Of a stretch of DNA of 64,000 nucleotides, positions 5,073 to 54,382 are shown piece after piece; the first letter of the stretch is position 1, and every line of letters starts with the position of its first letter. The notes under the pieces are model-generated. The model searched no databases. It was given only the letters and a program-made list of their open reading frames with translations, and was not told where the DNA came from. Position numbers and translations under genes: made by a program. The stretch is from NCBI GenBank assembly GCA_977017575.1, contig CDRNVI010000157.1:1-64000 (forward strand), written 5' to 3'. This stretch comes from Paramoeba atlantica (taxonomy: Eukaryota > Protista > Discosea).

Positions 5073-5948
5073 CTGTACCCCCCCTAGTTATCTGTCTTTT
5101 CGGCCCTTCGAATATTATTTTACGTCGACTACCGCCCCTAGTTATCTGTCGCCTTTCTAAACAAAATGAAAAACGTATAAAATGAGAAGCAAAAATTCAC
5201 TTTTTTTCTGTTCTGCTTTTAGGGTAATGGTTTTGCGTGGCGTTCTACGGTAAAAATTAGAAAACAGGAGTCGGAGCTCGTTATCCCCTCCATCATCTAA
5301 GATTAGATATTTATGAGTTTCAATGGGTACGCGTCTCAAATTTTCAATGATAATATAAAGAAATTTAAAGATCGTCTATGTGAACATTTGAAAACGGACT
5401 AGTGCCAATGGACTAGTCATTGGACCAATACCAATGTGTTGTCCGCAGCAAGGTCCTGGTGTAAACAGTTGTGCAATTCACATGGTAAATAATATGTATT
5501 ATGTATGTAAATAATATGTATGTATAATATGTATATCCGTGATATAGACATTATTTCCTGTCGTGACCTTTGTGAAAATTGGAGTCCGATAGCTCACGAT
5601 GTTTTACTTTAACCCATGGATGTAACATAATTAATGTTTTAACTCTATAAAATGTGCGTGAATTATTCTCTGGGCTTCTTTTAACCTGTAGACGCATATC
5701 TTCAGCTTGTAGTACCCCATTGGGGTAGAAAGGAATCTTCCTAGGCAATAAAGATACCGTTTCTGTAACATTTCATTCCTTCGCTTTTTTTGGCGACGGA
5801 CCCCCCTAGTTATGTGTCGCACTTTGACCCCCCTAGTTATCTGTCGCACCCTTACCACCCCCCTAGTTATCTGTCGCACCCTTACCACCCCCCTAGTTAT
5901 CTGTCACCTTTTCCCGAAAAGTAGCGACAGATAACTAGGGGGGTACAG
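5073..5948. mobile_element. MITE (876 bp), pogo-type TIR, TA TSD
   Basis: TA|CTGTACCCCCCCTAGTTATCTGTC ... GACAGATAACTAGGGGGGTACAG|TA. Internal direct copies of CCCCCTAGTTATCTGTC occur at 5135 and 5800-5905. Confidence 0.9.
5750..5768 (+). other. Spliced-leader-like motif AAAGATACCGTTTCTGTAA
   Basis: Identical 19-mer at 16818-16836 and (reverse complement) 52180-52198. Resembles the kinetoplastid SL core GATACAGTTTCTGTAC. Confidence 0.5.
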
Positions 5949-6025
5949 TACATCCCACCTATATGAAGTAGAGAGGGAAAAAGATCGCTCGCACGCGCGA
6001 TGTACGCGTTCCAGAGCTGCTGCTT

Positions 6026-6049
6026 TAACGATAAAGACACAGTTTCTGT
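6026..6049 (+). other. Spliced-leader-like motif TAACGATAAAGACACAGTTTCTGT
   Basis: Contains both the TAACG and ACAGTTTCTGT parts of the kinetoplastid SL. Followed by degenerate TTGTTGGATACTTTTGT repeats resembling the sequence after the 23579 copy. Confidence 0.5.
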
Positions 6050-8162
6050 CGGATACTTTTGTAACTATTGTTGGATACTTTTGTACTACTTTTGTTGGAT
6101 ACTTTTGTATACTCTTCTTGGCGAGTTTGAATGCCTCCGACGACTCGACCGATGACACGTAACACTCAGAACAATTCAACTAAGAATTTTTCCGATCAAG
6201 ACTCATTTCAAAGAACTCTCGATGACAACCAATTGGAGGCGACGTGTACTCAAATTACTGAGAAGATAGGTGATCAAGATCGACGAGTCGTAATACGAGC
6301 AAAATGGATTCGTCCGCAAAACCCTGCCGATCGCATTATTTCCTGCGCCACTAAACCAACTGTACGGATATTATTCGCAGTTTTTTATTATTCGCAATAC
6401 ACTTATTATTCGCAAATACACTTATTATTCGCATAATTTTTGGTTTTTGGATTTTTTGTCTTTTTTATATCCGATTGAAGTGTCACAAGCTCACGATATG
6501 CGTTGGCTTAATGCAGGAGGAACCGTCAATTATATGCAAAAAAATGAGTCTTGTACGAGTAAGGTGAAGAGAGGGATGAAATTCTTCACGGAGTGCGTGA
6601 ACGGAAAGTTGAAAGTAAACGGCGGGTCTAGATTTCGACTTATTTTGGCAGACATCCGACTCTTTTGTGAATCTGTGGTGATGCAATAAGCAAAGGTGGT
6701 GCAATAAGCAAATGTGGAGGAAGTTATTAAAAGAGAGATGTAGTCATATAACGAGAAGCACGATGAATTCGAGAATAATTTTAGGAAAAAAAAAATTTTT
6801 TGCGCAATTTAGATACTAATTGTCCCATTCTTTTGACTGGAAGTGTGTGACCAAGCGCCGTAGAAAAGGGAGGAGGCGCAAGGCCAAAAGCAGAAGGCGG
6901 AGCGTTCTGACTTTTTGCCGCAGCAATGACGACTTCCTCTCGTGGGAAGCTGTAAGCATACCTAGGGAACGCTTTTCCTTACATTTCTTTCGCATGAATG
7001 CACCGAATGCGAATAATAAGGCAGTATGGAGCGTTTACCCGTCAAAAGTATACTTTCCCACATCCTATGTTAAAGTACATTGAAGTCGAAGTTTTAGAAG
7101 TCATTCAACCTCGGAAAGATCCACAAAATTCGGCATCTGAGTCTTGCCCGTTTCCAGAACTTCAAGAAGGCCGAGATTTGGAGAGCGATGTAAACCTTCC
7201 CACTCCACAAGTCGAATGTGCCCCTTTGACCCCCCTTCCGAATGCGCCCCTTCCGTCCCCCTTGCGCCCTCCTTTCCCCCCTTCCCTTGCCGCCTTTCTT
7301 GCCGCCCTCCTCGCCCGACCTCCTCGTCTGCGCTCCTCGCCTCGTAGTCAGGGCGTCCGATTCACGTCGGATGATGGGACTTCGCGATCCCAGTCTCCCG
7401 AGCTAAGGCCGGCGCTCGCAAAACAAAGCGCTAAATAACGAGGCCCGTTTAGGGCACTGGTCGTCCCTTTGGGATCGCTGGTGAATGAGTGCGTCCTCAC
7501 TCTACTTGTGATGGTACATACCCCTACATAACCCCGATATACTATGATAACTCTTCGTCTTTCACTTCAAAGATAGACACTCAACAGAAGATTTTTGCAT
7601 AACATGGAGACATTGAGGAACATTGAGGTGTTCCGCGTTCCATGGAACCACAACGTATGTATTTTGGCATGAACCTGACCAAAAAAAATGAATGACAAAA
7701 ATATGCCGCTTCGCTACAGGATGGGCTGTTCAAAAGCAACGCTAATATTATTAGCGTTTGATTCATCACTCTTCCGTGATTAAGCACTTTCCGATATGTT
7801 GTCCAGCCACGTTCGCGATTTCGAGCGCAGAGATGAAAATAGAGTTTTGCCTTGCTGTGCCCCGGGTGCGAGAGGGTGCGAGACAGACATGCTTGAACAC
7901 TGTATTCGAATCGATTGAGAGCTTCCAGCAATAATGACAGAAGAGGTCGCTTTCCTGTGGAGCCTTTTTAAGGAGTGGATGCATGATGCGGCTCGTCGAG
8001 GAGGAATTGAAGCGGAAGACCCACACCAAATAAGTATAGGGCAGCAACTGTTAGATAAATTGCGAATAAGACAAGGCGTTTATCGTGGAGCGGATTTTAC
8101 GTACGTTCGAACGCGATATGAAAATCAGCGTAGTGATGATGCTCTCGGGAACACCTTACTTA

Positions 8163-9701
8163 CAGGGGTGCGGGTCTAAGGGTGGGAGGCGTCTAAAATG
8201 CGTAGAAGTTGTCCAATTTTGGAAAATAATAGCGCATTGGATAGCTCTCACAGAGTTGTATGTTTTAGGCGCATTAAAATCCTGTGATTTTAACGTACAT
8301 ATTTTTTGATACCACATTTCGCTTTTTTCCCTCGCAGGAAATACACTTTTTACTAGAAAATGCCCCAAAAGAGCGCTCGCTCGAGGACTTCCCGTGGAGT
8401 ACTGAGCGATAGATCGTATTCTTCCCCCGCCCCCGTCAAAGAGAGTCACCGCATGCTTTTGGTGGCGGAATACGAGCGCACAGGATCGTACTCCGCTACG
8501 GCGCAGCACTTTGGTGTTCATGAGAACACTGTAAAACGTTGGGTTGAACGTTTTACCCTTACAGGTGACGTGTTAACGGCATCCCGAGAGCGTGTCTCGA
8601 CGGTGGTTACCCCTGCGTTCCTGGATGTGGCTCTCAAGCTTGTCGACGAGGGGTATCGCGACCTTGTTTACGGCGTAGAGAGCTGGAGCGATCTTCTGCG
8701 AGAGATCCGTAGCCAAGGATTCACCTGCAGTCGACGGACCCTAGTCGACACATTGAAGAAGCAAGGCGTTGTGCTCCGCACTCTTCGGCGACGACCATCA
8801 CTCACACTCGAACACAAGGAGAAACGGTTGCAATTTTGTAAGGCGATGCTCGAGAAGAGCGACGCTCAACTCCTTCATTTTGTTTATTGTGACGAAAAGA
8901 AGTTTACTTACGGTCGTGGGCGTTCCGGGCGAACTTACCTTTGTCGGAGGACGGACCCCCATAAGGAACAACGAGGCGAGCTAGAATCATGGTACGGCGG
9001 AAATGGGATTATGGTTTGGATGGGTGTGAGCCTCAAACACGGCTTCCATCTCCACATTTTCCCTCCTCGAAATTCAGAAGGCCAGAAACTCACCGTTACG
9101 GGTGAAATTTTTGATCAGGCTATGAAAAAGCCACGGGGCTTTCTTCAATATTTAAAGCGACATCCAGCGGCCACGATTGCCATGGACAACTGCCCGGCCC
9201 ACAACAAGGCGCGTGCCATGTTCCGTGATACAGGAATTTCCGTTCTTCCCTGGCCTGCAAAATCTTCAGACCTGAATCCGATCGAAAATTTGTGGTCTGT
9301 GATGGACACAGACAAAAATCTTCTTCGACCCCGAAATCGACAGCAACTGGAAGCCGCCACTGAGGGGTCTTTCCTTAAATTGAAACAGACCCACTCTGCA
9401 ACGGTTCAGAAAACGTTGAAGAGTTTCAGGAAGCGTTGTGAAATTGTTATTAGTCGGAACGGGGGGCACTGTGGTTACTAATTGTCTTTTGCAATCCAAA
9501 TTACAGAAATTATTGACATCACTAAAGTATTGCAATATGTGTTTTTGACCCTTACATGAAAGGGGGGTACCCCCCAAACCCCGGATGCTACCTATCCTAA
9601 AACATACAACTCTGTGAGAGCTATCCAATGCGCTATTATTTTCCAAAATTGGACAACTTTTACGAATTTTAGACCCCCCCACCTTTAGATTCGCACCCCT
9701 G
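8163..9701 (+). mobile_element. Intact Tc1/IS630-like transposon (1539 bp)
   Basis: ~105-bp TIRs starting CAGGGGTGCG, TA on both sides, and a single intact transposase ORF. Confidence 0.95.
8360..9481 (+). CDS. Tc1-like transposase, DD32E
   Basis: HTH (YSATAQHFGVHENTVKRWV) and catalytic motifs YCDEKKF, AMDNCPAH and SDLNPIENLW. 32 residues between the second D and the E by my count. Confidence 0.95.
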   Translation: MPQKSARSRTSRGVLSDRSYSSPAPVKESHRMLLVAEYERTGSYSATAQHFGVHENTVKRWVERFTLTGDVLTASRERVSTVVTPAFLDVALKLVDEGYRDLVYGVESWSDLLREIRSQGFTCSRRTLVDTLKKQGVVLRTLRRRPSLTLEHKEKRLQFCKAMLEKSDAQLLHFVYCDEKKFTYGRGRSGRTYLCRRTDPHKEQRGELESWYGGNGIMVWMGVSLKHGFHLHIFPPRNSEGQKLTVTGEIFDQAMKKPRGFLQYLKRHPAATIAMDNCPAHNKARAMFRDTGISVLPWPAKSSDLNPIENLWSVMDTDKNLLRPRNRQQLEAATEGSFLKLKQTHSATVQKTLKSFRKRCEIVISRNGGHCGY

Positions 9702-10573
9702 TATAGTTTACGGTGAGAATTGGTCAAATAAATTACTTATTTTTGTTATACCCTTTTGTAGTTGGTGATGGCCGAGGGGCATTGTACCTATTGTTAATAA
9801 TTCAACTGAATTGATATACACTCCCCAGATGTAACCCCGTGTGTATATACGATTATAACGGATTTTCGTATGGCTGGTTATTAATTCAAGACTTTGTTTC
9901 ATTTGTGATTCGCAACAGCTAAAGTTTTCATGCCAGTAATCGACGGACCATCGACCCGCACGTTACGTTCGTCGCGTAGTTCTTCACCGGTGCAACCGCT
10001 CGCGGCTACCGAGCCGTTAATACAGGAGGACAAACATTATGGGCTCTGTGATTGGAGAAAAGCTACTAACCAAAGATGGGGATAACCCGTCGATTGACGT
10101 CCAGGCGAAATTACGGCGTAAAGACCAAGGAAATTTGGAAAAACAAACGCTGTATGGTAAAATATGGAAGCAAGGGTTCGATTTGTGGGGCATATGGGAG
10201 GACAAGCCGTCGAAAGAATATCCTTTCCCCCATCCCGAGTTAGACTATTTCGAGGTCAACGTTATGGAGCAGAAGAGAGTACCCCGTTTGTTGCCTTCAG
10301 AAGAAGGCCGGTCAGACGCCATGACTATACAAGGTCCGCCGGAGCAAGGCGGGGGAGGCATGCCAGATCTCATGGGAGGGAGGTCTATACCATCTGGGGC
10401 ACTGACATTCGTCTCTAACAATCCAGATGGCACCGGTAGCGCACTACTAGATCTAAATGCTCTGGGTCCGTAATAGCCTATTACGTTTGGACCATGGATC
10501 AACGCAGTTGATGACGGCGGTTTCCGCATTTGTGATCTCATCCGTGAACTTCGTGATGCCCCAGAGTATGGCC

Positions 10574-11011
10574 TTAGGATGCGCGTTTGCAGCATGGGTG
10601 TCCCCAGGTCACTTTGCTTTTGCAGTTATGTTTACAAGGTGTGCTACGTTGTGACGGCCTCATAGTTCCCGCCGTCGACTTTTTCATATCTTGATTTACA
10701 CTTTCTGGTGGGTTACTTCGCATAGAGGTTTGCGGATCTAACGTTTCTTGGAATATGAGGTGGCGTTTACAACAAGGGTGTTCACATTGCGCTTTGTCTA
10801 TGTACCGATGTTTACATTCCGGGGCGGTTTGTTGTGCATCAGGGGGTGTAGGCGCGGCATGGGGTACAGTTGTGGGTGGAAGCGGTGGCTCGAAAAGTCC
10901 TTTCTTGCAACAGGGATGCCAGCAGATATATCTGTCCTTACACTTATGTTTGCACGGAGCTAGCGGTGGTGTTGTTGTGTTGCTGGTAGGAGGATCGCTA
11001 CTTTTTGTCAC
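10574..11011 (-). CDS. Small ORF (or gene remnant) with three Cys/His clusters CxHxCx5CxHPCC
   Basis: CKHKCKDRYICWHPCC, CKHRYIDKAQCEHPCC and CKHNCKSKVTWGHPCC separated by Pro/Thr-rich linkers. No ATG start (GTG in the track). Confidence 0.5.
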   Translation of the reverse strand: MTKSSDPPTSNTTTPPLAPCKHKCKDRYICWHPCCKKGLFEPPLPPTTVPHAAPTPPDAQQTAPECKHRYIDKAQCEHPCCKRHLIFQETLDPQTSMRSNPPESVNQDMKKSTAGTMRPSQRSTPCKHNCKSKVTWGHPCCKRAS

Positions 11012-14000
11012 ACCCTGGATGGAATTTGTAGTAATTTACTACATGAGTAATTGGTGTAGTAAAATACTACATTTGAATTGAACATTACTACATCTTCTGC
11101 CGTAGTATGATGTGACGTATAAACCCCTCGACACGAATAAAACCCCTCTAAAATCAGTAGGATAAGTTCGTAGGGTAGAAAGTAGGGTAGAAAATCAGTA
11201 GGGTAGTTTGTGGGGTCGCGTGCAATAGCGGTTTGAGTGGCAGATTTTCCTGCTCTGTCTGTGGGGACGCCATTCGGGTACAACTTGGATTTTCGGCTAG
11301 TCACGTTGCTTGGTCTCTTAGAAGAGTCCTGCGACGCCCGGTGAGTATCCTGCCCTTTCTGGTAGAAGAAAAGCATGTGGTGATTAAAAGGGAGGAAAAT
11401 TTGAAAATTTCAACAAGGTGCAGGAGAGAAGAAACCATAGTCTGATAAATGCGTCAGACTCGGAAAACTTCTCTCCAGATGAATCTGATCAAGAAATTAC
11501 ACTCATCATGAAGCTTTGAACATTGCGGGACCGGAAATTGAAGCGGAAACATTGCGGGTCTCGGAGCTCGCGTCACTGTTTCATCACCATATGTTTCGGC
11601 TTTCACATGCAGTGGGTCACTACCCTATTTTGGCTTTCATGTACTTCCTTGGATGTTCCATAAGCACTGACACCTGCAGAACGTTGAACAGAATCAATCT
11701 GCCCTTTTCGGTTAGATTGAAGCAGATATGAAGGCTGTGAGGGAAGGGGTCGCGTGTTTCAGCATTGAATTGTTTTAAATGCACGGATTACAGGGCCCGC
11801 GGAAACTTTTAAACCTTCGAAAAAGCACTTTTAAAGCGCTTTCAATTTTAGTTTGGAGCTTTTAAAAGCTTTTTTTCAAGATAATTATTTTACCGCTAAT
11901 TCTTATTCTATAACGAGTGACAGCAACTTGACCCAAGGAACTTTCTGTTTAGAATATTTTGGACGTACCTCTGACCCCGATGGTGGAGCATCCCCCGACA
12001 CAGGAACCTACATTTACAAGGCTTGTCCGGAAGGGGAAAGAAAGACATTCATGATTGCACGAGGCATGTCGTCTTCCTATCAAGCGGCACTGCAGTATCT
12101 TAAAAAGCATTCCATAAAATTTGAAGTGTGGCGTGAAGAAAGACATGCCGAGAGAAGACAAAATCCGACACTCCACGTAAGCACGCAAGCGCAAGACGTT
12201 GTGGATTGGAAAGTACTCTATTCCACGTGCCGCTTTTGAAGATCCAATATTTCGGAACAAAAATTGTCGTGGATTATCCCCATGCCCATGTTTCTTATGC
12301 AGTCACATTTGGGAATTTTTCTGAAAAAGGAATTCATATGCTTTTTCATATTGCTTTTTTGTCTTGATTTTTTATTGTAAAAATGCAATAAATTGTAGCA
12401 TGTCAAAGATTCAGCGGATTTATTATTATTTTCACGCTTTTAAGACTAAATAGCTTTGCCTTAACACCCTTAAATGTGTTCTTCACAAAGACTTCCCATA
12501 TTATCGATATTACATTTCAAAGCTATATTACTTCTTTAGGCCAAATTTCTACGACAACGTTTCACGTGTAAGTATGGCTCACATTTTCATTCGGCATTCC
12601 ACGGATGCACACACTACATGCTCATTTACATAAGTGCATCCGCAGGGTAAAGGTCTACACATGTGCTCGAAAGCTCGAAAACTAAAAAAAGCTCGAAAAA
12701 CACTTTTAAAGCACCTTCCATAGCTGAAATAATAATATTTGTAATAATAAGAGTGTTGAAATCTATGAAAGGCAAAACCTGGCAAAACCCGCATATTCCT
12801 CATTGACGTGGCGAAGAAATGTACTTCGTCAAAATTAGTGAATAACATACTTGGTCATCATCCTGCGCTGCAAAACAATTTTTGCGCCACAAAAAACGAA
12901 AATTTTGAAAAACTCGAAATAAACCCCCAGAAAGGGTAGCCGAGGTCTTGGCGCACATTTTCCCCCTGGTATCAACAGGACGGGGCCGTCAAGTTCGGTT
13001 TTTTCTGAAAAGAAAATTGAAAAAAAAGTCAACTTGGCGAAAAACATGGCTTAAAAAATAGTTTTTCAAAACCAAATTACTTACTTGTATAGTAGTTTGA
13101 GAGTTTGGGACCTGTACTATCTTTCTATGACGTTTTTTTCACAAGATACCCCTTCTTTAAGTCGTGACACATCTCCCAAGATGATGCCCACCAAAATAGG
13201 TGTCCTGGCAAAACCCGGAAAAACTTAACAGGTTTCAACCCTCTTATAATTCCTATGTCTTTCATAAGTAATTATAAATGCAACTTCGACCGATTCGATC
13301 AATATTTTTTAGGAAAAAAATACTCACTACTTTCCTGACACTACTTAATCGACCTCATGTGTACTGCCACTGCAAGCCAGTGACAACTTGTGCAAGCCAC
13401 AATGGCCATTTTTCTAGTGGACTTTACTTCGGTTGTTGTTAGATCATCAAAAAGGTGAGTTGAGAAAAAACTTCTCTGCTTTCGCTTCATTTTCGAAATG
13501 AGTGAAAGTGACCGAGATCACGCTCTGGATGAAACTCTTAAGTTCAATGAACTCGTTTTTGAGCACGAATGCGTTCTACGTCAAACAATTATAGGCGCTC
13601 TAGAAACTCACTTTGGCAAAGTGATCAACAATATACGTTCCGAAGAATCACTAAAACATACATGCCTCATGAGCTTGATAACCTTACTGACGTAGGATTA
13701 GAACGATTATCTATTTGAAGCGCTTATTTGTGAAATTTTGATGGCAGGTATCTAAGATAACAACTTGTACTCTCCTCCAGGTTCACCAGTTTTACATCCA
13801 TAAGTAATTACTGTCACCCCCCCTTTATACTTCCGTTTTTATGAAACCGAAAAATTAGTACCCCCCCTTTATACTTCCGCCCAAGAAAAAGCTTTTTTTT
13901 GAACATTTTTTTTTCATGTTTTCGTAAAAAAATTGGAGATGCATAGAGATATTGCTATATAAAAAATTATTTGCGATATTTTTTAACATGCCATTACTCA

Positions 14001-15375
14001 CACAGTGGGTTAAGCTTCGTCCCCCTCTTCCTCGCGTTGGACTCCCCAACGAACTAACAGTTTCGAGCCCCGAGCCGGCGACTTTGCCATTGTCCGTCGG
14101 TTCACCTCAGGGAAGGAAGAACCTCACGATGCAGGAGAAGTTGAAGGAGAAGTTGTGTGTCACTCCAGTAATAGTGCACAACAACTTAGTGACAAATACG
14201 GCATTTCGTCGCGAAGCATCCGATCCATCCGAAAAAATGGTGCCGGATTTTACCAGAAAAAGGTAAATCTAGGCGGCCGTAGTCGCAAGCGTGAAAGGGG
14301 TTTCAACAAGGACAGGCATGTCGAAATGGAAAAGATAAATGAAATCCTCCTTGGCGAACTCGATGGCATGCGACCGATCACGAAACATACCGTTCTACAT
14401 TTGATGGAGGAACGTGGTGTTTTTCGATCTGACCTGTATGAGAAGGCGAAAGAGGAAACGTACCATCGATTCAAGTACGTTTTCGGATGGACGAATAGAA
14501 AGTTTGGAAAAGCTCAATGTATTTCCCCCAAAGACATCGATAATCGAATCAAGGTGTGGGCAAAAAAATTTTACGTGCAGCACACGGTTCGAAAATATAA
14601 TTATGTGTTGTTCGGGGACGAACTTCGCTCTCTATTGACGGGCCAACCACAGGTGTGAGCGTTGCTCCCATTGGTGCTCTGAACGTGCGAGTGAAGGGCA
14701 CCAATGAGAAAGAAAATGTAACTGTTTTTCTGGCTGGGATATATGATGTGTGTGCGAAAAAGGCGCTCCCGCTACCTCCAATAGTCATTTTTCAATCTTC
14801 GACGAAGGAAGAAAATTCCCGCATATTAAAGGACCTCAAGAGCGTTGAAAATAATTTTGGGAAAATTTACGTTCGCGTAACCGAGTCCGGTTGAATGCAA
14901 GAGGAAATTTTCTCCAAAATTCTATCAACCTACATAGCGCTCTCCCGACACCTTTAACCCTACTTCTTGATGAAGATTCTGAAGAAGACAGTACACCAGA
15001 CGACTGGAAGCGCTTTCGCCGTGGTAACGTAATGATTTCTTCTCTCGTTTTGGACACCTTCTGCACAAGGGTTTTGGAATTGTATTTGTCCGAATCCAAA
15101 GAGTCTAACATTGTCTACTGGAACATCTGGGTGACACAGAATATGTTAGCTAGAGGGATACTTCCGAAAAATGTAAATCATGCTACTCGCATTTATGCTT
15201 CTCTCCGCTATGAGTATCGCTATGTACTCATAGAAGTCGGGGGCCACATTATCGCCGTACATGACAGTCAGCGCTTGCAAAGGCCCGCTGCTGCAAAGGC
15301 GAATGTAGATCGTTTTAAAAACTGTCTCATGAAGGTTCTGCTGGTAGATCGTCCCAATACGTACCAACTAGTATA

Positions 15376-16359
15376 CAGGGGGGGCCACGAAAACTGACAA
15401 GGTCCGCATTTTAGCGTCCTGAGGCCGTTTGAGCTGATTTTTGTTGCAAACGAGAGATCTCGTTCTGAATATCGTGTCTACGCTATTTAAAATACAAAAA
15501 CGTTCGCCGGAAAACATTTCCAATGAGTTACAAAAGTGAAATTTAAAGATTTTGCAAATTGAAAAACGGGTCTAAAATTCGTAATGTTTACGTACCGCGG
15601 CCCAAAAAGCACCCAGAAAGTAGGTCTTAATAGCCAGTATTCCCACCTCCACGCTCACGTAGTATAGCGAGGCGCGTGGGAAGACTCTTTAGCGTATTCA
15701 CATACGCCTCGTGACATTCGTTCAACAAATATTCCTTGGCCTTTGGAATAGCCGCTTGTAATTCTTTTCGATTCTGTGGACTACATGGATAAAGTACTTT
15801 ATCCACTCTCTTATGTACCCATTTAAACCCCGGACACCCGAATTGTGTGTCTCGCTCAGCATCAACAATAGCACAGAGCATGGCTCGGAACTCATCCGTA
15901 CCAACGCCGTTATCGCGCGAGTAGGGTGCACGTGCCACGTCACCTGACTCATCGAAACGCGCTTTGTACCGAGAGACAGAACTCTCTGAACAGTTCATCA
16001 TACGTGCCGTATCCGGAATAGATGTCCCACGGTGTCTTTCGTGTGCGCAGACAATGCGCACAGGATATGAACACTGTTCTGGTGATAGCTGGCGACGGTT
16101 TAGTCTATTCCTTTTGCCCATAGTAAGGTAAAAAGAAGAAAAAATAGCCTTTTTTACGTTTTTCGATACTTTTTGCAAAATATTTTGCCCAAAAATTCAA
16201 TATTTTGTAAATATATATTTTTTTGATTAGCAGAAATGGGCTCCAAATAGCGTAGACACGAGATTCAGAACGAGATCTCTCGTTTGCAACAAAAATCAGC
16301 TCAAACGGCCTCAGGACGCTAAAACGCGGACCTTGTCAGTTTTCGTGCCCCCCCCCCTG
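15376..16359 (-). mobile_element. Internally deleted Tc1-like element (984 bp)
   Basis: ~115-bp TIRs starting CAGGGGGGG with TA TSD. A related truncated copy lies at 44351-44870. Confidence 0.9.
15627..16121 (-). CDS. Open in-frame fusion of Tc1 HTH domain to transposase C-terminus (no DDE core)
   Basis: SIPDTARMMNCSESSVSRYKARF (HTH) is joined to PQNRKELQAAI..RERGGGNTGY. The catalytic motifs are absent. Confidence 0.55.
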   Translation of the reverse strand: MGKRNRLNRRQLSPEQCSYPVRIVCAHERHRGTSIPDTARMMNCSESSVSRYKARFDESGDVARAPYSRDNGVGTDEFRAMLCAIVDAERDTQFGCPGFKWVHKRVDKVLYPCSPQNRKELQAAIPKAKEYLLNECHEAYVNTLKSLPTRLAILRERGGGNTGY

Positions 16360-16817
16360 TATGTTGGTTGTCTACAACAGGAACCCGGCAATAAAGATTG
16401 TGCCCTGCATGTCATCAACAATCTAAATAATGCGTTGCGTGAGACGAAAAGCATTGTGATCACTCGCAAGCAAATTTCTAAAGAATGCTTTCCTCGAAAA
16501 CAATAGTTTTGTTAAAAACTTTAACAAAATATGTTAAAAGGATATTGCTCATGCGGTATGGTTTTATGCTTACCGCCCACGTGTTTTTCTTGTTTGTGCT
16601 AACATCTTTTTAATTCTCGAATATTCAGTTTATATTCTGTACTCGTTGCTCTTCAAAAAAAAACTTGTGCTCTCATAACTTCTCTACCATCTTATTTCTG
16701 CAATTAAGCTGTGCTCTTTATGTAGTGAACAAAATGTATTGTGCTGTTTTTGAAGTACGTTGCGCGAGGATTGGATATATTAAAGCGAAAGATCCATGGC
16801 ACTTTGTGCAAGTAAAT

Positions 16818-16836
16818 AAAGATACCGTTTCTGTAA
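16818..16836 (+). other. Spliced-leader-like motif AAAGATACCGTTTCTGTAA
   Basis: Identical to 5750-5768. Lies 240 bp inside the right TIR of the pogo-Ulp1 element. Confidence 0.5.
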
Positions 16837-17164
16837 ATGCGAGAATCCTTCCACTGCGAACATCTCAGCCCTCCGACTTTTTTGAGATTAGAAGATTGGG
16901 TTTGCTCTATACGACGAGCGCCGCGAAACAAAAAAATATTTTTTTTCGTCCATTTTTCAAAAAACAAAAATTCAGCCCCCCCCCCCTTTATACTTCCGAA
17001 AGTCAGGTTCCCCCCTTCAGTACTTCCAAAAGTACTGAAACCGGCGGAAGTATAAAGGGGGGGGGGGGGGTGACAGCATAACTATAATTATAATTATAAG
17101 TTCAAAAAACTTATAATTTATACTTATAATTACTTATGGAGGGGACAGTAATAATATATTAATA

Positions 17165-21126: not shown

Positions 21127-23039
21127 TAAATAGTATGAATATTATACATGTAATTTCTAAAGGTAGAGAGCGTACGTTGCGTGTGTGTTTTTTAGTTTTG
21201 TTTTACATACGTATTATTTAGTACGTAAGTTAGTAGCGGGGATAAGATTAATGAATATGCAGAATCTACGAGCATTTTTAAACTATTAAATCATTTAATG
21301 GTTCAATTCATTCTTCACGGCTGGCGAATGTCGTACCAAACCTTTTGTAATGGTCTCACGTGCGGCAGAGTCGATTCCACGACTGTAGCTTTCTATAGTT
21401 GTATTCTGATTCAGTGTACACTTTCTCTGGTCGCGTCCCAACATCAGCCATGTTATCTTCGCTGGGTATGTCACCGAGCATTAGGCTAATGCTAAATACT
21501 AGAGCTATATACTAGTCTAGTATATAGCTAATTTAGCTTTCCTTTGAAACCCTCACACCCTTTTACTGTGTGATCCGGTGTATCTAACGGGGAATATCCT
21601 TTCACAAAAGAGTGGCACGCAGCCGTATTATTATTAGCTATTACAACAAATTGAAAATCATTGTCATGAGCGCAGCGAATAGCATTTGTTATTGCTGTGG
21701 CTTCCACTTATACATGTCCTTATGTACAAGGGGGACCAGCTAATGCTGGGGGTCTCAAATTTGTAAAACTTGGCCAATTTTGGAAATTATTAGCGCATTT
21801 GAGAGCTCTCACATCACCCTCCTGTGGAGCATATATCGTTTCCCGTGCTTTTACACACGACGCATTTTAGAGTAAAAATGCGTTTTCTCGACTTGCATTT
21901 TTTGCATTTTTTTCGCTTTTTTATGGGTTTTCTCCGGTTTTCCCCCTTTTATTCATCATTCATGCCTCAAAGACGAGTACCTTCACGTTCTTTTCCCGGG
22001 AATTTATCTGAGAGCCGTTGCTCACCCCCAGGGCATACAAAACTAACTCATAGAATGTTGTTAGTTGATGATTAGGAGAAAACGGGCTCGTTTTCCGAAA
22101 TTTCTCGTAATTTTAGTGTGCGTGAAGACACTGTCAAGAACGGCACAAGACGACGGGTGATGTTCAAAACGTACGAGAGAAGAGACCTCGCACCGTACAT
22201 ACAGATGCTTTGCTGCAAACAGCCTTGCAAGTTTACGAAAATCTTGACCATTCATGCCCATCCTGGAATTTCATTCTCAGAGATGTTCACAAGGCGGGGT
22301 TCCAGTGCTCGCAACCAGCTCTAAGGGAACATGACGTGACGACAACAACAACATGCTACATGGTCTTGCCGCCCGTACGTTCAGTAAAAAACCCTTTCTC
22401 TCGGCGAGGCATAAACTCAAACGTTTAGACTTCGCCAAAGAGTTGGTAACTTGGACTGAACAAGAGCTGTCTCACATCATTTGGTGTGATGAGAAGTTTT
22501 TTCGGTGCGGTTGCCGCGGGAATCGAATGTTTATTGGTCGCGAAAGCGACATCGACAAGTACTCGACCCCTGGAATGGACCGTTGGGTGGGGGGGGGGCA
22601 TTATGGTGTGGATGGGGATAAGTCTCAGGTATGGGGGGTTCATCCACATTTTCGAAGAAGATTCATCTCTGAAAGGGAATAATTTTTTTATTTTCTTAGG
22701 CGCCATCCTGCAGCTGTTGTCGTGATGGACAACGCGACTGTCCACAAAACAACACGTCCTCATTTTAAGGATAGCGGGATAAAAATGCTGGATTGGGGCC
22801 CAAATCTCCAGACGTGACACCTATTGAGAATTTATGGTCAATGATAGATGCCATAAAATGTAGAAAAGAGCCACTGAACCGTGAATTCTTAAAAGAATCC
22901 ATCCCAGCTTCTTAGAATGAGCTGCTTAATGAAGTCGGTTTCGTGGAACGCACTCTAAAGAGTGTGCCAAACAGAATGCGTATTGTTATAGAGAGGGAAG
23001 GGGGGCACTGTGGGTACTAGGTTTGTCATTGTTTTATCA

Positions 23040-23607
23040 TGCACTTATAGTGCAGAGATTTACTCACCATGTCCTTATCCCGCATACGACGGGTGGATCA
23101 TGTGAGGTTTCGTCCTCGCCGGAGGTGTGCGGGTGCGGAGAGCTGGCGTCCCAGGTGCAGAGAGCTCGGTTGTCATGTGCAGGTGCAGAGAGCCGGATGC
23201 GTAATCCCCATATTACAGTTTCGGGGGCAATCCGGGTGCAGAGAGCTGCGACAGAGCCGAGGTGCGGAGAGCTGGGCGACCGCCAGGTGCAGAGAACCGA
23301 GTCTCGTCGGCGGAGGACACGTCTAGTGGTCCTCAAGGGAGGCCACCGTGACGCATGGCCCTCTCGGAGAGGAAAAAGACAAGTCGAAAAAAGCCGAGAG
23401 GGGGAAGCATACTCACTCCAGGGGAGTGAGTCGGGGAGGGGTGAAGGGGTGAAAGCGCGTCCCCTGCTTCAGCGACAAGAGGGACAGTTCCGACCTTAGT
23501 GCCGGCCGGCAACGGGCATAAAAATACAGTAAGAGTATGCCCGTTGCCGGGGAAAGAAAGGATTAACTAAGGAAAAAGTACCAACAAGGTACAGAAACTG
23601 TATCTTT
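23040..23607 (-). other. Insert starting with an SL-like motif, then a 15-bp perfect hairpin and ~7 GGTGC(A/G)GAGAGC repeats
   Basis: SL-like motif at 23607-23579, hairpin at 23506-23550, and a 20-mer at 23472-23491 identical (reverse complement) to 28000-28019. Confidence 0.6.
23579..23607 (-). other. Best spliced-leader-like match: AAAGATACAGTTTCTGTACCTTGTTG|GTA
   Basis: 23 of 26 positions match the trypanosomatid SL 3' part plus donor as I recall it (GATACAGTTTCTGTACTATATTG|GTA). Confidence 0.6.
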
Positions 23608-23843
23608 CACTTTTTCGCAAATTTCTAGAAAAACTTGCAATTGACGTTGCCACCTACCGTTTTGAGCCACCTACCATTTTACAAAAAATGGCATTTATCC
23701 GGGAAACGATATATCCTTCACAGGAGGGTTGTGTAAAAGCTCTCGAATGCGCTATTAATTTCTAAAATTTACCAAACATTTGCAAATTTGAGACCCCCCC
23801 AGCATTAGCTGATCCCCCCTGTACATGTATTTACACATGTATA

Positions 23844-24300: not shown

Positions 24301-24301
24301 T

Positions 24302-40789: not shown

Positions 40790-41900
40790 CGCCTCCTATC
40801 CCTACTGGTACACAACACCTGTTGCCTGGGAGCCTAACATATGAATTTCGTGGAACCAAGCGCGTCAAGATATGTACAACTGGAAAAGAGCGTAACATCA
40901 CAACTTGTTGGATGTGGTGTCGTTCTTCGAAAAATTGTGATGACACCTGGTCGCACCTGATGAACCCACCTCACCTGATTTGGAGCACGCAATCAGAAGT
41001 TGGACCCATTGCACAAGAAACCAAGCGAGCCAGCGTGAAATATAAATGTACCAGCACTACGTCGAAATCTGGTTGGACGACTGGCGTAACATTTTTACAG
41101 TGGGCCAAATTTGAGTTTTGCGACCGATCAAAGTACCCACCTTACAAGACTTTGTTTGTCCTAGATCTTTACGCAGCACATCGCACTAAGGAACTTCTTC
41201 TATACTTGAAGGAAATGCATATCGATATTTTGTTTATTCCTGGCGGATGTACCCCATTAGTACAACTTATGGACACAAGCGTTAACAAAACTTTTAAGAA
41301 AAACTATATGGACAAGTGCAGCACGCAAGTGCAGCACAAAAACTATATGGCGTGCAGCACGCAGCTTTAAGGGACCGGAACGCATGCTAATTACTACGTT
41401 GTATGCTTCATTAAAGATCAGAAACTGTTTTATTAAAAATGATAGCTGTATTATAATAAAGCAGAATAAATCTAAAGTGTATTTTCTGTTTATATTGTTT
41501 TTCCCTTGTAAACAACATTTGTATTCATATACAATGTATTTAATCTATTGGTACGTGGGCTCATGTTATCTCTATCGTTCACGGTATATTCGGAAAGCTG
41601 CTCAAACGATAGTTACCGTTTCTGTAAAAATCCCAACTTCCTCTGAAAGTTGGGCACAAAACCGAAATGGGGAAGTAAGGTCGGGACCTCCTCGTGGTCT
41701 TCCCTGGCACTGCCATCTCGCTGATGGCACTGAAGCCGACCTAATAAGTTCGAAAAAGGGTTTTTTCATTTATACGGATGTATACAAAAATGTGTCATAC
41801 AATTCCTCTTGATGCTACGTGACTTGTCCTACCACGCGACTTATCCGCCTTTTCCGCTTTTTTGGCCTTTTCGTCGGGACAAGTGAGGGGGGGGTGACGG
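40790..41900 (+). mobile_element. 5'-truncated pogo/DDE_1 element (DD35D)
   Basis: SGWTTGVTFLQW..FVLDLYAAH..FIPGGCTPLVQLMD at 40822-41370. Right TIR ..GAGGGGGGGGTGACGG|TA ends at 41900. Confidence 0.8.
41605..41627 (+). other. Spliced-leader-like motif variant AACGATAGTTACCGTTTCTGTAA
   Basis: Shares TACCGTTTCTGTAA with the 5750/16818/52180 copies. Lies ~270 bp inside the right TIR. Confidence 0.4.
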
Positions 41901-42866
41901 TACGCGGGGGGGTCACCCCCGGGTAGGGGGGTAGAAAATGCGCGCCAACACCCCGGCTACCCCTTCTGAGGGTTTTTTTCGAAAAATAGTTTTTTTTACA
42001 AAAATTCGTGCGGTATGCGCCCCATAGACCCCCCCATGGACCGGTCATTTTTTTCAATTTTTTTTTCAATTTTGGACCACCGGAGCCCCCTTTTATATTT
42101 TTTTCTTCTAAGTAATAAACCCCCAGAAGGGGTAGCCGAGGCATTGGCGCACATTTTCCACCCCTGTACTCGGGGACGACTCCCCCTGGTATCAACAGGC
42201 CGGGGCCACCAAGTTCGGTTTTTTCTGAAAAAAACTCAACTTGGCGAAAAATACAGCTTAAAAAATCGTTCTTCAAAATAGTTACACCTATTGCATTTTG
42301 AGAGTTTGGGTCCTATCCTAGCTTTCTAGACCGTTGTTTTCACAAGATATCCCTTCTTGAAGCCGTGACATGCCTCCCAAAATGACGCCCCAAAAAATCG
42401 GTGTCCTGGCAAAACTCGGCAAAACTTAACAGGTTTCAACCCTCTAAGTTTCGATTTTGTTTTTGCCTTCTACTTCAAGTAACTAGGCTCCTGTGATGCC
42501 GAAAATCAAGGATGGCGATATGCTCATGGAGTGGTGGTTTCTTTGCCACTCGGAAAACATGTTTTGATTGTGTATGAGGTATCAGAAGGCAAACGAACCC
42601 TACGGTTTCAAGCAGATAAAAAAGTCCGCCGAACAATCCCACTCTGTCCTAATGGAATATGTACAATGTAAGGCATTGGAGATGTAAAGGCATGGAGACT
42701 GGAAATAGGCGGTGGGCAATTCGTCTCACAAAGAAGCATATATTGCCTTCAAAGACATTAGAAAGTTACATGAGCAACATATCGGGAGCAAACGCGCGCT
42801 TGCCCAAACACATGTAGTCGAACCTGTCGTGATTGTCGAACCTGCTTAATTATAATTATAATTATA

Positions 42867-44205: not shown

Positions 44206-44212
44206 TATTATA

Positions 44213-45109
44213 ATTGAGGGTCTGCGGGTCGTGGCACACGAGACCGCGCGAGACCGCGGTTTGGTTTTGGCATGGAGAGACAAAAAAATGCTAGTTTTTG
44301 GATGGAGAGTAGAGCATAATTTGAATAAAAAAGAACTTTCACTTCATATACAGGGGGGGCCACGAAAACTGACTAGCTTCGCATTTTAGCCTCGTGAGGC
44401 CGTTTGAGCTAATTTTTGTTGCAAACGAGAGATCTCGTTCTGAATATCGTGTCTACGCTATTTAGAATACAAAAACTGAAGAAAGCAAGCCTTTCCCATG
44501 GGTCGAAAAACTGAAATTTTTGAGACTTTGCAAATTGAAAAAAGAGCGCAAAATAGCAATTTTTGGCCTTTCGCGGTAGAAACTAAGTCTTAATATCCAG
44601 TATTCCCACCTCCACGCTCACGTAGAGTAGCGAGGCGTGTGGGAAGACTCTGTAACGTGTTCACATACGCCTCGTGACACTCTGCCAACAAGTAGTCCTT
44701 CGCCTTAGGAATAGCAGCTTGCAATTCCGTTCGATTTTTCGGACGAAGATGGGTGTGGATGTACTTATCCATCATAAATGCGTGGAAACACGCATCGGGT
44801 ACTTGCTCAAGGAACACATAAATTATGTGCCCTACGAACCTAGGAAACCGCGGAAGCGAAAGAAGTAAATTGGTTTAGTTTTATTGATCTTTTAATATCA
44901 GTCTTGGTCTGTGTTCAACCTCGCTCTATTTATTCCAATTGAAATTGCGTAGACGAAATTGCGATTGAAATTGCTTAGACGTATACTATAAACGAAAACT
45001 ATTTGACAATCTCTAAAATATCATTATACCCTTTTACGAATATGAGACCGCGCGAGACCGCGCCGAGACCGTGCGAGACCGCGGTTAACGTCACCCGCAG
45101 CCCCTCAAT
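44213..45109. mobile_element. MITE with ATTGAGGG(G/T)CTGCGGG TIRs containing a truncated Tc1 piece (44351-44870)
   Basis: TA flanks and GAGACCGC subterminal repeats. Smaller relatives lie at ~31952-32080 and ~33121-33170. Confidence 0.75.
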
Positions 45110-49143: not shown

Positions 49144-49462
49144 CTGTGACCCCCCCCTTTATACTTCGCCCATTTTGAGCAGTAACGAAGTATAAAGGGG
49201 GGTCTGAAATTTTGTCCCCGCTGCAAAAAAAATAGCGCGCCGCTTCGCGGCGCAGCTCATCCAGTTTTCCTGTCTTTCCTTTTATATCACCTTCCATTTC
49301 TAGAAGGGAAGGCTTAGAATGTTCTTGTTTTTTTTTAAACTTTTAAAAAAACTACAAAAAATTAAAAAAAAATCGTCCCCCCTTCGGGGGGGCGCACAAA
49401 AAACGAAGTACAAAGTATAAAGGGGGGGTCTGACCAGCGAAGTATAAAGGGGGGGGTCACAG
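49144..49462. mobile_element. 319-bp MITE, TA TSD
   Basis: TA|CTGTGACCCCCCCCTTTATACTTCG ... CGAAGTATAAAGGGGGGGGTCACAG|TA, with extra internal TIR copies. Confidence 0.9.
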
Positions 49463-49529
49463 TATAAATATAAATGCAAAAGTTTTATAATTTATATTTA
49501 TAAAAATTAATTAGCGGGGGTGTAATTGG

Positions 49530-50333
49530 GCGAAGGGGGACAGACGGAGTGCAACTTTAGTTGCGTCAATTTCATTGGACGGTAATCTTCTTGTTCCATT
49601 TATTATATGGAATAGAAAAGAGTCACACCACGGGGCCAAGGTGCAAACTTGTACTCAAGGGGTTCAGTACCAGACAGAAAACCACTACGTTTCAACCAAT
49701 GCTCTTTTGGAATATATTGATCGTGTTGTTCAGCCTTACTACATTAAAGTCACTGAAGAGCTGAAAATTAGCGGGAAACCCTTAATTCTTCTCTTAGATT
49801 GCTGCAGTGTACATGTTTCTCGCACGACCAACGAACAGATAATTTCTCAGTGTTGCTCAGGGGGGAAGTATTTTTGGTTGCGATTGGTTTATGTTCCAGC
49901 GGGGTGCACTTCGCTTTATCAACCTTGTGATGTTGGGTTTTTTAATCGACTGAAACCAAAGATCGTGAAGCATCGCACGATGTTAATACTGCAGTATTCC
50001 AGACAGCAACGCCAAAAAAGAGAACGCATAGGCACTTCTAAGGCCTTGGGCGCTAAAATTGCGAAAGGGCAACTATTAGAATGTGTCGAGAAGGCATACA
50101 AGGATATGGATGATCCGCTTTCCAAAAACGCAACCACATCTGCACGGGCTAAATGCGGAATCACGACCGAAACTCTTAAAGATTTAACAAATTCTTTCGA
50201 AGCCCAGACTCGTCGACGTGATATATTTTCCTATGTGGTGGAAGATGCAGATCAGTCAGAGCATGAGGATGCTCTGACTATGCCTGAAGAACTTGACTCA
50301 CAGCTTCAGATAGGTATTGGTATTCGTTTATAG
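49530..50333 (+). pseudogene. pogo/DDE_1 transposase C-terminal half
   Basis: ATLVASISLDG..LILLLDCCSVH..YVPAGCTSLYQPCDVGFF. The HTH and first D are missing. Confidence 0.85.
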
Positions 50334-52050
50334 TACATTACCTCTATGTGATTTCTTTTGGTCTAAAAAAAACTGTTAGAAAAAAAACGTTTGCAAACTT
50401 TTTTGCATACATACTGTACGTACTATGACCTCGGAGAGTCAATTAAATCAAGTAAACAGCATTGCGGACAAGGAAATGGATGCGAAACGCAAACGATACG
50501 ACTGGGGTTAGCTCAACATGTTAGCTGTCACGCGTTAGCTGAACGTGTTAGCTAAGAGTTGTTAGCTCAACTCTACGCGTAAGGAGCCTGATAAACGCTC
50601 AATCACCATTGAATCACCATTGAACCACCTTCCTTCGTCGGTGACCAAAGAAGACATAACAAAATATTACTCTCTGTATGGGACTATTGATTTTTTAACA
50701 ATCGCATCGAAGAAAAGCGCGCATCCAGCGTTTACTGTAAGGAAATAAAGAACAGAAACTAGAATTTCGCATGAAGTGTGTGAGAATACGTTTTGAAGTG
50801 CAAGTTAGCTTTGAATTTTTCCCAGTATAGTTTACAGATAATACCTGAGCCCACGGCCACAAAGGTTGTCTTCCGATCTCTTAGGAACAGAGAAATAGGT
50901 CCTCACCTATTTGGAGAACCATATTTATAGCGCTCTGCCGATTAAAATCACCAATGTCCCGCCAGATATGGTGCTTCACTTATTGTCTCTTATACCGGAG
51001 GGAACATGCACCCTTAAAACGCATAAACCTCGGACCCTTGTATACATGCAAAAGGTATTATAATGTAATGCATATTTTAGCCTGATGACGCATCATGTAA
51101 AATATTTACGTGGATAATAAAATACTTCTGCCCTTCTTTCACCATGTTTCAAACACCTAGAATTTCTAGGTAGGTTAATACGTTTCTTAGAAGAAAAAGA
51201 AACGTATGACTTCGGAAGACCGCAAACTGATCGGAGTTCTCCACAATCAATAAAATTTTCCCAAGCATTGTTGTGTTGCTGTTGTCTTGTTGCAGTTATC
51301 CAAGCCAACATGGAATTGCCTCAAAGTTGAAAGCAAATGCCTAAAACAATCGTGCATTGCGGGCCAGGAGGGTCGCTCCCAAACCATTGTTTCAGACAGA
51401 GGTCGTTTTCAAATCGATTCCCACTCTCTATATTTTAAACTATTCAATGTAGCTCTATAATGTTTTTCTTTTGTTCATAGCAACGTATTGGGCTATTTGG
51501 AATGTGTTTTTCACCGTTTCAGCATTCGTACGGTAGCGCTGCTACCATGGTAGCAATAATGTGTCCCTCCGCCGGTTTACTCCACATTGCTCAATACATA
51601 TTTTTACTTGCACTTATTACTAAGGAAAATAACATAGCAACGCTACACGTTTGCGAACGTTACATGTCTATGTATATCGGTATCCTCAATCAGGAGTCCC
51701 AAACGCAGTTTTTGAGAAAGAACATGGCTTTCCACCACTCCGCATAGCTTGAAATTCTTGGACAAATTAAGGTCTTCTAGTGTATTTGGGAGGCTTCTTA
51801 GAGTTAGAGTAGTTTGAAAAATTTACTACAATGTATCAATATTTCAAATTCGTCAAATAATTCAAATAACATAGTAAAGAATCGTAATTATAATGTTGAA
51901 CAAAACTTTTAAATCGAGGTGGTGCGTCAGGGAAAAGAGAAGGTGGTTTTAACGCAGAGCGCCAGGGTGTTATGGCGTTAGTTCATAGGGATTTGCTGGC
52001 GTTGCAGAACGGTATGTTTCATATTTCGTAAAATTGTGTCTTTGATATAA

Positions 52051-54382
52051 CATACCCTGGACGGTAATAGGTGGTAATTACCACATGCGTGGTAATAGGT
52101 GGTAATTACCACTTTTCTATTACCCAATTACCATGACAGAACGTGGGCTGAAATTTACATTCAGGAAAAAACCATATGTTTACAGAAACGGTATCTTTAG
52201 CTTTAGAGATCGCTTGCCTCTTTTCTCCATAATGCCCCCTTATGCTGTACTTTGACAAGTCTTGTAACAAGCAACACCTACAGGTATTGTATGGAATGCG
52301 ATGCAGTGACAAATAGCAAGTACTAATTTAAAAATTTACATGTATGAGTTTACAAAAGAAAAACAATAAGAAAATTATAGACTGACGGAAAAAAAACTAG
52401 GTAAACCTACATGTATTTATTATTTATGTATTTATTATGTATGTATGTATTATTATGTATGTATTTATTATGTGGTTATTGAATGTATTGAATACAACTT
52501 TGCTAAATATAATGTGTACGCTTCGACAAATTATTATCACGATCATAACATGACACGCCATCATGCTCGTCTGAAAAATCGAATTTCAAATATAAATAAA
52601 CTATGAATCGAACAAACAAAAAAGGGATAACTATCAGGGATATTTTAATTCATATGCTCAGCTCTGATTCGCTCGTATCTGTATCACTAGGCGAACCATC
52701 TAAATCTGGTACTGTTTCGACCCTGCTGGGACCAACATAATCCAATTTATTTAAATTACCGCGAATAAACATCTGCGTGGCGATTACATCGCTGTCCAGA
52801 GAAGCCTGACGTGGGTTGTATTTCCATCCCATTATGGAAAGAAGAGAATCGCACGCGGTGACTATGGGTGGGACCCACAAATAGTGCTGAGCGGCACAAA
52901 AAATTGAAGGAAACTGGACGGTGCCAACGTCTTCCCACCACTTCTACACCGAGGTATGCAACAAAGGTTTCCAGTGAAAAATTTTGCAACATACATGTGT
53001 ATATACGAACTCCACTCTTCCTCTGTAATGTGAAAAAGAGGTTGACCGCTTTGAAAAAGGTCGTTAGCAACTTCGACAGTGATAATTGGCCGTTCTTCCA
53101 CGCGGATACGTCGACTTGACAATATATGTTTCGGAGAAAAACTCATTACACCTTTCCAATAATACATGTAGGCTTTGTTTTCAAGTCGTTGTTTGTGCTT
53201 CTTCAGTGATTCCAATAGCGTTGTATTGCCATCCGTATTCTCTCCTTCTGCTATTAATCCCTGTATTATGGGGTAGGGAATTAAGGCCATTGGTTCATCT
53301 GGCATGTCAGACAATTGTTTTAGTGAATTATGAACAATATTCAAAATGTGTTAATATTTCATGCGCTTGGTTCATGAGCTCTTGAGTATCATGATCCCTT
53401 ATAATTTCGGCACATTTCTTGACTGATTCAGATGCACATCCCGAGTTGACTTCATCGGCAACAAAACGTACGATCGTTGGTAAATTTTCTTCGATGTACT
53501 TCAAACTTTCAAAATGTCCAATGCACCATCTTGTAGCCCCTCCCAATTTAGGGGCTGGAATTTTGTTCATACGTTTGGCGTGCTCAAGTGCTTCCAGAAC
53601 TAGCGGACCCTTTTCGACTAATTCAAGATGCTTTTCGTGGAGAGAGTCAGTTCCACGCAACGTCAAAAGCAGCGATCCCACGGGCTGCAAAGAAAGCGAA
53701 GAAAGTTTCTCTAGGGAACGGCAACAAAAAGGATGCAGATCCCTGACGATGATCCATTTCCTTAAAGCACAATTTCGAAGAAGTACTGTTAGTATTCTTG
53801 AAATCACACAAGACATAATAAAAATAACAGGATAAATCTCCGAATTTAAGCGGGTCCTCAACGTTCCCAGACTGAACTTTCTTCGTATTGTTTGAAATAT
53901 CAGTGACCTGTCTCAGTGTGGTCAAGCTTAATTGGCTTGGTCCATCAGCCACCCGCCGATTAACAGCATCGCGCTGTTCGTTGCTAATACGACGCGCTGC
54001 TCGCTTCCGAGACCTTGGAGTATTATCTGCCTCTTCTATGGTCATATCAGGATAGTAACTTGATTAATGAACAGTCTAAAGTAACTAACAGTTATGACTT
54101 TGATTAAAAGTATACGAGCGTGGGAAAAAGTATGGGGAATAGTAAGAAGTTGGATAAAAGGTACGAACGCCCTTACGTAGGTCCCAGAGGCACAATAACA
54201 TCGTATTTTGCGCCACAAGAAAGCAGAAACTCTGTATTAGTAGCGAAAAAAGCCCCCTGTATCACTTAGAACACAATTAGATAGGATAACGTAGGACTTT
54301 TTAGAAGTCACTCTGTAGACTAAAATATGTGGTAATAGGAGGTAATAGGAGGTAATTACCTCCTATTACCGTCCAGGGTATG
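52051..54382 (-). mobile_element. hAT-type element relic (2.3 kb)
   Basis: TIR CATACCCTGGACGGTAATAGG(T/A)GGTAATTACC. ATATAA is duplicated at 52045-52050 and 54383-54388. The fragmented ORF at ~52650-54045 has ATRW and a dimerisation-domain-like PPIVTACDSLLSIMG..R..L..IATQMFIRGN. Confidence 0.75.
52180..52198 (-). other. Spliced-leader-like motif AAAGATACCGTTTCTGTAA
   Basis: Identical to 5750 and 16818. In transposase sense, ~130 bp from the 3' TIR of the hAT relic. Confidence 0.5.

Follow-up and report, generated by a model that had tools for sequence, protein, structure and literature searches.

A block derived from the spliced leader near the 3' ends of many DNA transposon families

The window analysed here, a 64,000-nt stretch of a Paramoeba atlantica assembly (GCA_977017575.1, contig CDRNVI010000157.1, positions 1–64,000, forward strand), contains several DNA transposons, among them a miniature inverted-repeat transposable element (MITE), whose 3' regions share a 19-nt block resembling the spliced leader (SL) exon. 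Judged from the sequence, the 19-mer forms the unvarying centre of a hallmark that many transposons share and that derives from the SL exon of the organism itself, a protist of kinetoplastid type.

A shared block in the window and across the genome

Searching the window with up to three mismatches (0.01 matches expected from shuffles) recovered the exact 19-mer at the three places given in an earlier note on this DNA, together with two-mismatch matches at 41609 (+) and 23589 (−). The former is the variant that the note had started at 41605, and a decayed copy that it placed near 61301 is real and begins at 61300. The copies and their hosts are as follows (TIR, terminal inverted repeat).

5072–5948, + strand: host MITE of family B, flanked by TA, with termini CTGTACCCCCC
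5750–5768, + strand: SL-like block, exact 19-mer, in this pogo-type family-B MITE, 180 nt from its right end
16818–16836, + strand: SL-like block, exact 19-mer, in the family-F element 13811–17076, 240 nt from its right end
41594–41627, + strand: extended SL-like module of pogo family H, with the 13-mer core intact, the preceding 6 nt variable and a same-strand DDE_1 remnant upstream
52051–54382, − strand: host element C', with perfect 21-nt TIRs (CATACCCTGGACGG...), a 6-bp target duplication TTATAT and GGTAATTACC subterminal repeats
52180–52198, − strand: SL-like block, exact 19-mer, in element C', 129 nt from the element end
57989–58007, + strand: decayed block with four mismatches, in a B-like fragment

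Measured distances to the element end (180, 240, 129 and 276 nt, the last for element H) agree with the 130–270 bp inside one TIR that the note had given. Flanks are as unrelated as it described: alignment of 620 nt around the window copies yielded nothing alignable beyond the block. Among words of at least 9 bases, the block alone is common to the 3' regions of the three window elements, and the 5' regions hold no comparable word. In the family-B MITE, the stretch from the block to the 3' end carries one inverted terminal copy and four direct subterminal copies of a 21-nt repeat.

The hosts include Tc1/mariner/pogo elements, identified by TA-flanked TIRs (families B, A and K) and by transposases of the DDE_1 or DDE_3 type. 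Pogo-type DDE_1 remnants occur in families H, I, J and B; family K encodes a Tc3-type transposase (DDE_3 + HTH_Tnp_Tc3_2), and its terminus CAGTGCTCGC adjoins TA. Contrary to the note's view of unrelated hosts, A, B, F and H share a terminal design, TA + CTGTnACCCCCC, with differing binding repeats; C' does represent a separate TIR type, which family G resembles. Two of the note's assignments could not be confirmed. Element C', previously taken for a hAT relic, is not callable as hAT, having a 6-bp rather than an 8-bp duplication and, by Pfam on its open reading frames (ORFs), no recognised transposase or other match. In the element at 13811–17076, described as pogo-Ulp1, Pfam confirmed neither an Ulp1 nor a DDE domain. 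A further element is nested within the latter at 15378–16355, with 111-nt TIRs that are 97% complementary and a minus-strand helix-turn-helix ORF.

The block is strongly enriched genome-wide. The assembly searched (45.7 Mb, 248 contigs) contains 55 exact 19-mers and 121 exact copies of a 13-base core, ACCGTTTCTGTAA, against 3 for the reversed control. We read and classified 75 of the 121 cores, and statements about families rest on these 75. All 75 lie in mobile-element 3' regions, representing at least 18 families or subfamilies sorted by otherwise unalignable flanks and spanning pogo, Tc1, the third TIR type and MITEs. Near-identical loci on different contigs (C4/C9, C14/C23, C19/C43 and C21/C33) suggest uncollapsed haplotypes or recent segmental duplicates; because some contig pairs are duplicate or allelic in this way (e.g., C4 with C9, C14 with C23), independent insertions are fewer than the raw counts.

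Placement is non-random. The block occurs once per element, in 3' subterminal position and in the sense of the transposase; in all families with a visible transposase (pogo families H, I, J and B, and Tc1 family K), it lies downstream of that gene on the same strand, as the note had observed in the window. Its site is the inner border of the 3' terminal/subterminal repeat block, at family-specific distances from the element end: 121–138 nt in K, 129–134 in C, 133–146 in G, ~150 in A, 150–180 in B, 218–254 in F and 276 in H. Family N is the exception, at ~750 nt.

Relation to the organism's spliced leader

In tandem gene arrays that show the canonical GTATGAGAAGC intron start, the organism's SL exon reads AACTTTAACGATAAAGATACAGTTTCTGTACCTTGTTG; it begins with AAC, as euglenozoan leaders do, and contains the conserved core given for euglenozoan SL exons (PMC3795323). 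Its last eight nucleotides (CCTTGTTG) are unlike the CT(A/T)TATTG of the listed leaders. The exon–intron junction, CTGTACCTTGTTG/GTATGAGAAGC, occurs at 40 places, which we assigned as SL RNA genes; arrays lie on contigs C97, C107 and C3 and include two of 12 and 9 units with a period of ~2.56 kb and one with a period of 1454 bp. The true SL core followed by GGTA occurs ~825 times genome-wide, mostly at the heads of retroposons resembling short interspersed elements (SINEs). The window holds one such copy, distinct from the transposon block.

23589–23607, − strand: true-SL-type relic at the head of an SL-derived SINE (~23030–23609)

This relic has A and C at the two diagnostic positions, as in the true SL, and the SINE continues with GTAC and a long hairpin. 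We considered whether the SINE splits a transposon block and rejected this, as it does not. A decayed, nearly full-length SL copy, beginning near the SL's first bases, lies at 6020–6060, ~70 nt beyond the family-B MITE on its right side.

The block itself corresponds to SL exon nt 11–31 (ATAAAGATAC.GTTTCTGTA.) with two changes, A21C and C31A, that are common to every family read; the core usually follows directly after ATAAAGAT. The note's suspicion of an SL-like motif is thus borne out against the organism's own leader, which it had allowed might prove unrelated. Families A, D, G, H, I, J, K, M and O carry an extended module of ~40 nt, consensus GGAAAGCTACTCAAACGATAAAGATACCGTTTCTGTAAA, that aligns with the SL from base 1 (SL nt 1–31). 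Families B, C, E and F carry the 19–21-nt block alone, and subfamily B2 the 13-mer alone. The note had also raised the prospect of a longer dispersed repeat placed at random relative to transposon ends: the longer repeat exists, with the 19-mer as core of the ~40-nt module in many Tc1/pogo families, and the random placement does not.

The block is nearly identical to the SL exon over 21–31 nt, including most of the conserved core (PMC3795323), yet differs from SL RNA genes in several respects. Each family has C for A and A for C within the otherwise invariant ACAGTTTCTGTAC. All 75 copies lack the SL's last eight nucleotides, and no family has a conserved GT donor after the block, the sequences diverging right after TGTAA; lacking both, the block cannot act as a leader donor. 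True genes end the exon in TTG followed by the GTATGAGAAGC intron start, whereas the block has neither this end nor an intron. Its copies are dispersed, one per transposon, and the tandem SL arrays lie on other contigs.

These features bear on how the block arose. The note had suggested that different transposons repeatedly captured SL-capped cDNA, and retro-copied SL sequences are indeed common in this genome. A complete SL joined at an acceptor, as in a retro-copied mRNA 5' end, was found in none of the 75 copies, nor was any SL-to-acceptor junction at the block in the families read; the block always has one position and one strand. Given the two shared substitutions, the missing last eight nucleotides and the lack of a conserved GT, independent captures are ruled out, and we give repeated capture next to no weight. 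Among the 75 copies there was likewise no variant SL RNA gene with both changes.

The extended module could alternatively be an outward-facing start site or mini SL RNA gene, beginning AACT like the SL, that starts a short capped RNA or drives transcription across the element's 3' end. Its alignment from SL base 1 would suit this, as would family D, in which 38 nt run up to a possible GT, and there is a precedent in trypanosomatid Pr77, a promoter bound by SL-gene factors that is combined with a ribozyme of the hepatitis delta virus (HDV) type (PMC3383444, PMC8190864). We nonetheless regard a start site as very improbable: there is no conserved donor, SL promoter-like conservation upstream extends no further than GGAAA, the core-only families B, C, E and F have no SL-like 5' part, and nothing of use to the element lies downstream.

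Conservation and a neighbouring ribozyme candidate

The block is conserved above its surroundings. A BLAST search with the family-B 3' region (349 bases, 19 of them block) returned ~35 copies covering the block, and the exact 19-mer persists in 10 of 17 family-B copies that are 78–85% identical to the window copy (~0.5 expected at such divergence). An upstream 12-mer anchor used alone found 25 related sites, with 16 intact cores, 7 single-base variants and 3 insertion variants. Taken with the fixed position, this conservation is best fitted by a selected, shared cis element, the second of the note's two proposals; a trans-splice acceptor after the block found no statistical support (see below). 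A coding role was considered and rejected: in some families the block is readable as ...YRFCK following a stop, none of the ORFs that end there exceeds ~100 aa, and family H breaks the frame.

The same pattern could in principle be left by a neutral relic, if one ancient transposon took up a piece of an SL gene or cDNA that its descendants still carry, with young families and hitch-hiking beside required terminal repeats giving the appearance of conservation. Many hosts share one terminal design, making common descent plausible; within-family copies are young, duplicate or allelic contigs inflate the counts, and one relative has lost the core. That relative is a Tc1 family with 75% nucleotide ORF identity to K, found in a second assembly of this or a very near organism, whose module is degenerate. 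We think a neutral relic improbable, given that 13–21 nt stay identical between families while both flanks are unalignable, that the diverged family-B copies keep all 19 nt far beyond the expected number (10 of 17 against <1), and that one of the families bearing the block has other TIRs and a target duplication of 6 bp.

In the Tc1 relative (L095, 3800–4000), only GCTCAAACGGACACTTGTACG stands before a C-run terminus, a shortened, coreless relative of the module. Wider comparisons returned little: a metagenome scan for blocks tracking each host's SL gave chance matches only, in bacterial-looking coding DNA, and transposase relatives sought as a cross-species test came from the same or a very near organism's assembly or from contigs too short to include a 3' region.

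In element H, the block is followed by a putative self-cleaving ribozyme, and a decayed counterpart lies further along the window.

41632–41654, + strand: 8-bp hairpin in the interval between block and ribozyme of element H (z = −2.9 for the 83-nt stretch)
41669–41744, + strand: candidate HDV-like self-cleaving ribozyme, with the predicted cut just before G41669, 41 nt past the block (RF00094 match, manual fold, descriptor scan)
41877–41903, + strand: 3' TIR of element H, the block lying 276 nt from the end at 41903
61300–61430, + strand: decayed H/N-type module comprising block, hairpin and decayed ribozyme (~61355–61430)

With permissive settings, an Rfam scan of the 371 nt surrounding the family-H copy matched HDV_ribozyme (RF00094) at 41667–41733 (22.5 bits, E = 0.37). 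Folded manually, the 76 nt from 41669 are predicted to form the nested double pseudoknot with all expected helices: P1 of 7 bp with a G·U at the cut, P1.1 of 2 bp, P2 of 7 bp, P3 of 3 bp, L3 UCCUCGU and P4 of 7 bp. Minimum-free-energy folding recovered the nested part. The candidate catalytic C directly follows P4, and J4/2 differs among H, N and O. Copies in family N show only changes that preserve pairing through G·U, and the O copy is degraded; a strict descriptor identified 5 copies among the sequences read. In H and N, the candidate lies on the sense strand at the same spacing from the block. Whole-window Rfam scanning at gathering thresholds gave no matches, and RF00094 gave none genome-wide at E ≤ 10. 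Kinetoplastid retroelements are known to carry HDV-like ribozymes within their Pr77 hallmark (PMC3185411, PMC4035085); in the literature we found no report of such ribozymes in DNA transposons.

RNA-level and DNA-level readings of the block

We favour, at a probability of roughly 0.35, a selected cis element that acts on sense RNA to mark or stabilise the 3' boundary of transposon RNA. The block would be read on the element's sense transcript as a leader-mimicking site, to which a host SL-binding protein or ribonucleoprotein (RNP) would bind, and this binding would set off the transposon RNA's 3' boundary inside long polycistronic transcripts. In clade H/N/O, the adjoining HDV-like ribozyme would additionally cut the RNA downstream of the block. 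Spread was probably by descent within Tc1/pogo combined with recombination at the shared block. Our preference for action on RNA has three grounds: the SL works as a signal at the RNA level, the block keeps to one strand with respect to the transposase, and a putative ribozyme lies alongside in one clade. A fuller version seems to us unlikely as a whole: a portable cassette in which the SL mimic recruits SL-binding machinery, sometimes with a hairpin and sometimes with an HDV-like ribozyme, setting the transposon RNA's 3' end, insulating host transcripts and being exchanged between superfamilies by recombination at the mimic.

Several observations weigh against action on sense RNA. MITEs, which have no need for a transposase mRNA, keep the block exactly, and a requirement at the DNA level would fit this equally well or better. 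The block stands at a tight distance from the element end but at a variable one, from ~130 to 600 nt, from the ORF end. A polypyrimidine-AG acceptor after the block is not supported statistically (pyrimidine richness P ~0.05, combined criterion not significant). In the extended module, an inverted repeat could form a hairpin, with 87.5% of cells pairing against at most 43% for slid controls, but compensatory changes are absent and more cells break than keep the pairing. The ribozyme match stays below the RF00094 gathering score (22.5 against 50 bits), and the ribozyme is limited to the H/N/O clade. Block and ribozyme are also separable, since one A-type MITE carries a ribozyme copy (minus strand of L004) without a block upstream. 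Nor is the block universal, since the Tc1 relative of K has only the degenerate module. Finally, homology between related copies sharing one flank is lost a few bases from the block in five comparisons, which points to a DNA event. The break positions, relative to the core, are:

C versus C': −6
D3 versus D2: −5
B2c versus B2b: −5
B versus B2b: 0
B2d versus B2b: +15, i.e., 2 nt beyond the core

A DNA-level site accommodates much of this. Bound as a duplex, the block would matter for transposition or recombination, through a host architectural factor in transpososome assembly or an SL-gene-recognising endonuclease or recombinase of SL-targeting retroelements. We hold this reading tentatively, as nearly as likely as action on sense RNA, because MITEs keep the block, the DNA-end distance is tight and breakpoints fall at the block edges. 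Noncoding MITEs retain it across subfamilies 15–20% apart; the distance to the DNA end, mostly 120–180 bp, is independent of ORF position; and all five breaks fall within 6 nt of a block edge. On SL-headed SINEs, the SL relic has its border at the same place as the block's 5' border (SL nt 11), and this is also where CRE/SLACS-type elements have their fixed insertion point in SL genes (PMC12278014).

Composite elements mark the same border. In family C, four loci (L005, L008, L023 and C49:194227) join a GC-rich retroelement-like ORF fragment and its 3' untranslated region (UTR) exactly to the block's 5' edge, followed by the 130-nt C 3' end. The last 33 nt of this UTR recur elsewhere (e.g., window 44867–44899) with other sequence downstream. 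An anchor search with the 3' end of the fused fragment returned the same four composites and unrelated contexts, with no further SL-type junctions, which if anything tells against a DNA-level site.

Other points also count against duplex binding. The kinetoplastid SL exon has no known DNA-binding role, and the two fixed changes weaken the SL palindrome that a dimeric DNA binder would favour. The predicted ribozyme in one clade would indicate that the region is read as sense RNA. The breakpoints may have arisen passively, by template switching or recombination at the only identity common to the families; a site-specific event at the SL-like site is likewise possible.

Among known systems, the closest likeness is to Pr77 of the trypanosomatid L1Tc/ingi, SIDER and DIRE elements (PMC3383444, PMC4035085, PMC8190864), also a short sequence common to different kinetoplastid mobile-element families. 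Pr77 is linked with host Pol II/SL-gene factors as well as with an HDV-like ribozyme and helps elements cope with polycistronic transcription, a role that by analogy the block may share. The two differ in sequence and position: Pr77 comprises the first 77 nt of a retroelement, starts CCCTGG (PMC3185411) and is itself ribozyme and promoter, whereas the block stands at the 3' end of DNA transposons, derives from the SL exon and is separable from the ribozyme. CRE, SLACS and CZAR and this genome's SL-headed retroposons involve the same SL stretch with the border noted above; they are retroelements inserting in or starting with the true SL, whereas the block is an altered internal copy in cut-and-paste elements. 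Retroelements with long terminal repeats (LTRs) offer another parallel in their primer-binding site, 18–19 nt that are identical across unrelated families through a match to one host RNA; that site is tRNA-complementary and primes reverse transcription, whereas the block is SL-sense and DNA transposons need no primer. A conserved 16-mer in the 3' UTR of Trypanosoma brucei variant surface glycoprotein (VSG) genes, proposed to pair with the SL exon (bioRxiv 10.64898/2026.10.18.760011), is similarly a short conserved kinetoplastid 3' UTR element with a sequence link to the SL and to 3' end formation. It is SL-complementary and lies in host genes, under a model that is itself a proposal, whereas the block is a copy of the SL and only weakly complementary to it.

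DNA transposons of kinetoplastids are almost undescribed, with only Merlin reported, from Bodo saltans and Perkinsela (PMC8101967, PMC12278014). Kept by many families at a single fixed place, a mimic of the host leader would offer a handle on how cut-and-paste elements are expressed or tolerated within promoter-less polycistronic units. It also bears on an old puzzle, the strong conservation of the SL core and the identity of what binds there. As the block tolerates two changes and dispenses with the SL 3' end, it defines a naturally occurring minimal variant that binding experiments and mutagenesis could use.

One insertion places the block beside a host gene. At C16:421824–424842, a family-E element lies ~190 nt beyond the stop codon of an Alg9-like mannosyltransferase gene and is oriented opposite to it; the block thus does not in every case run in the sense of the host gene next to it.

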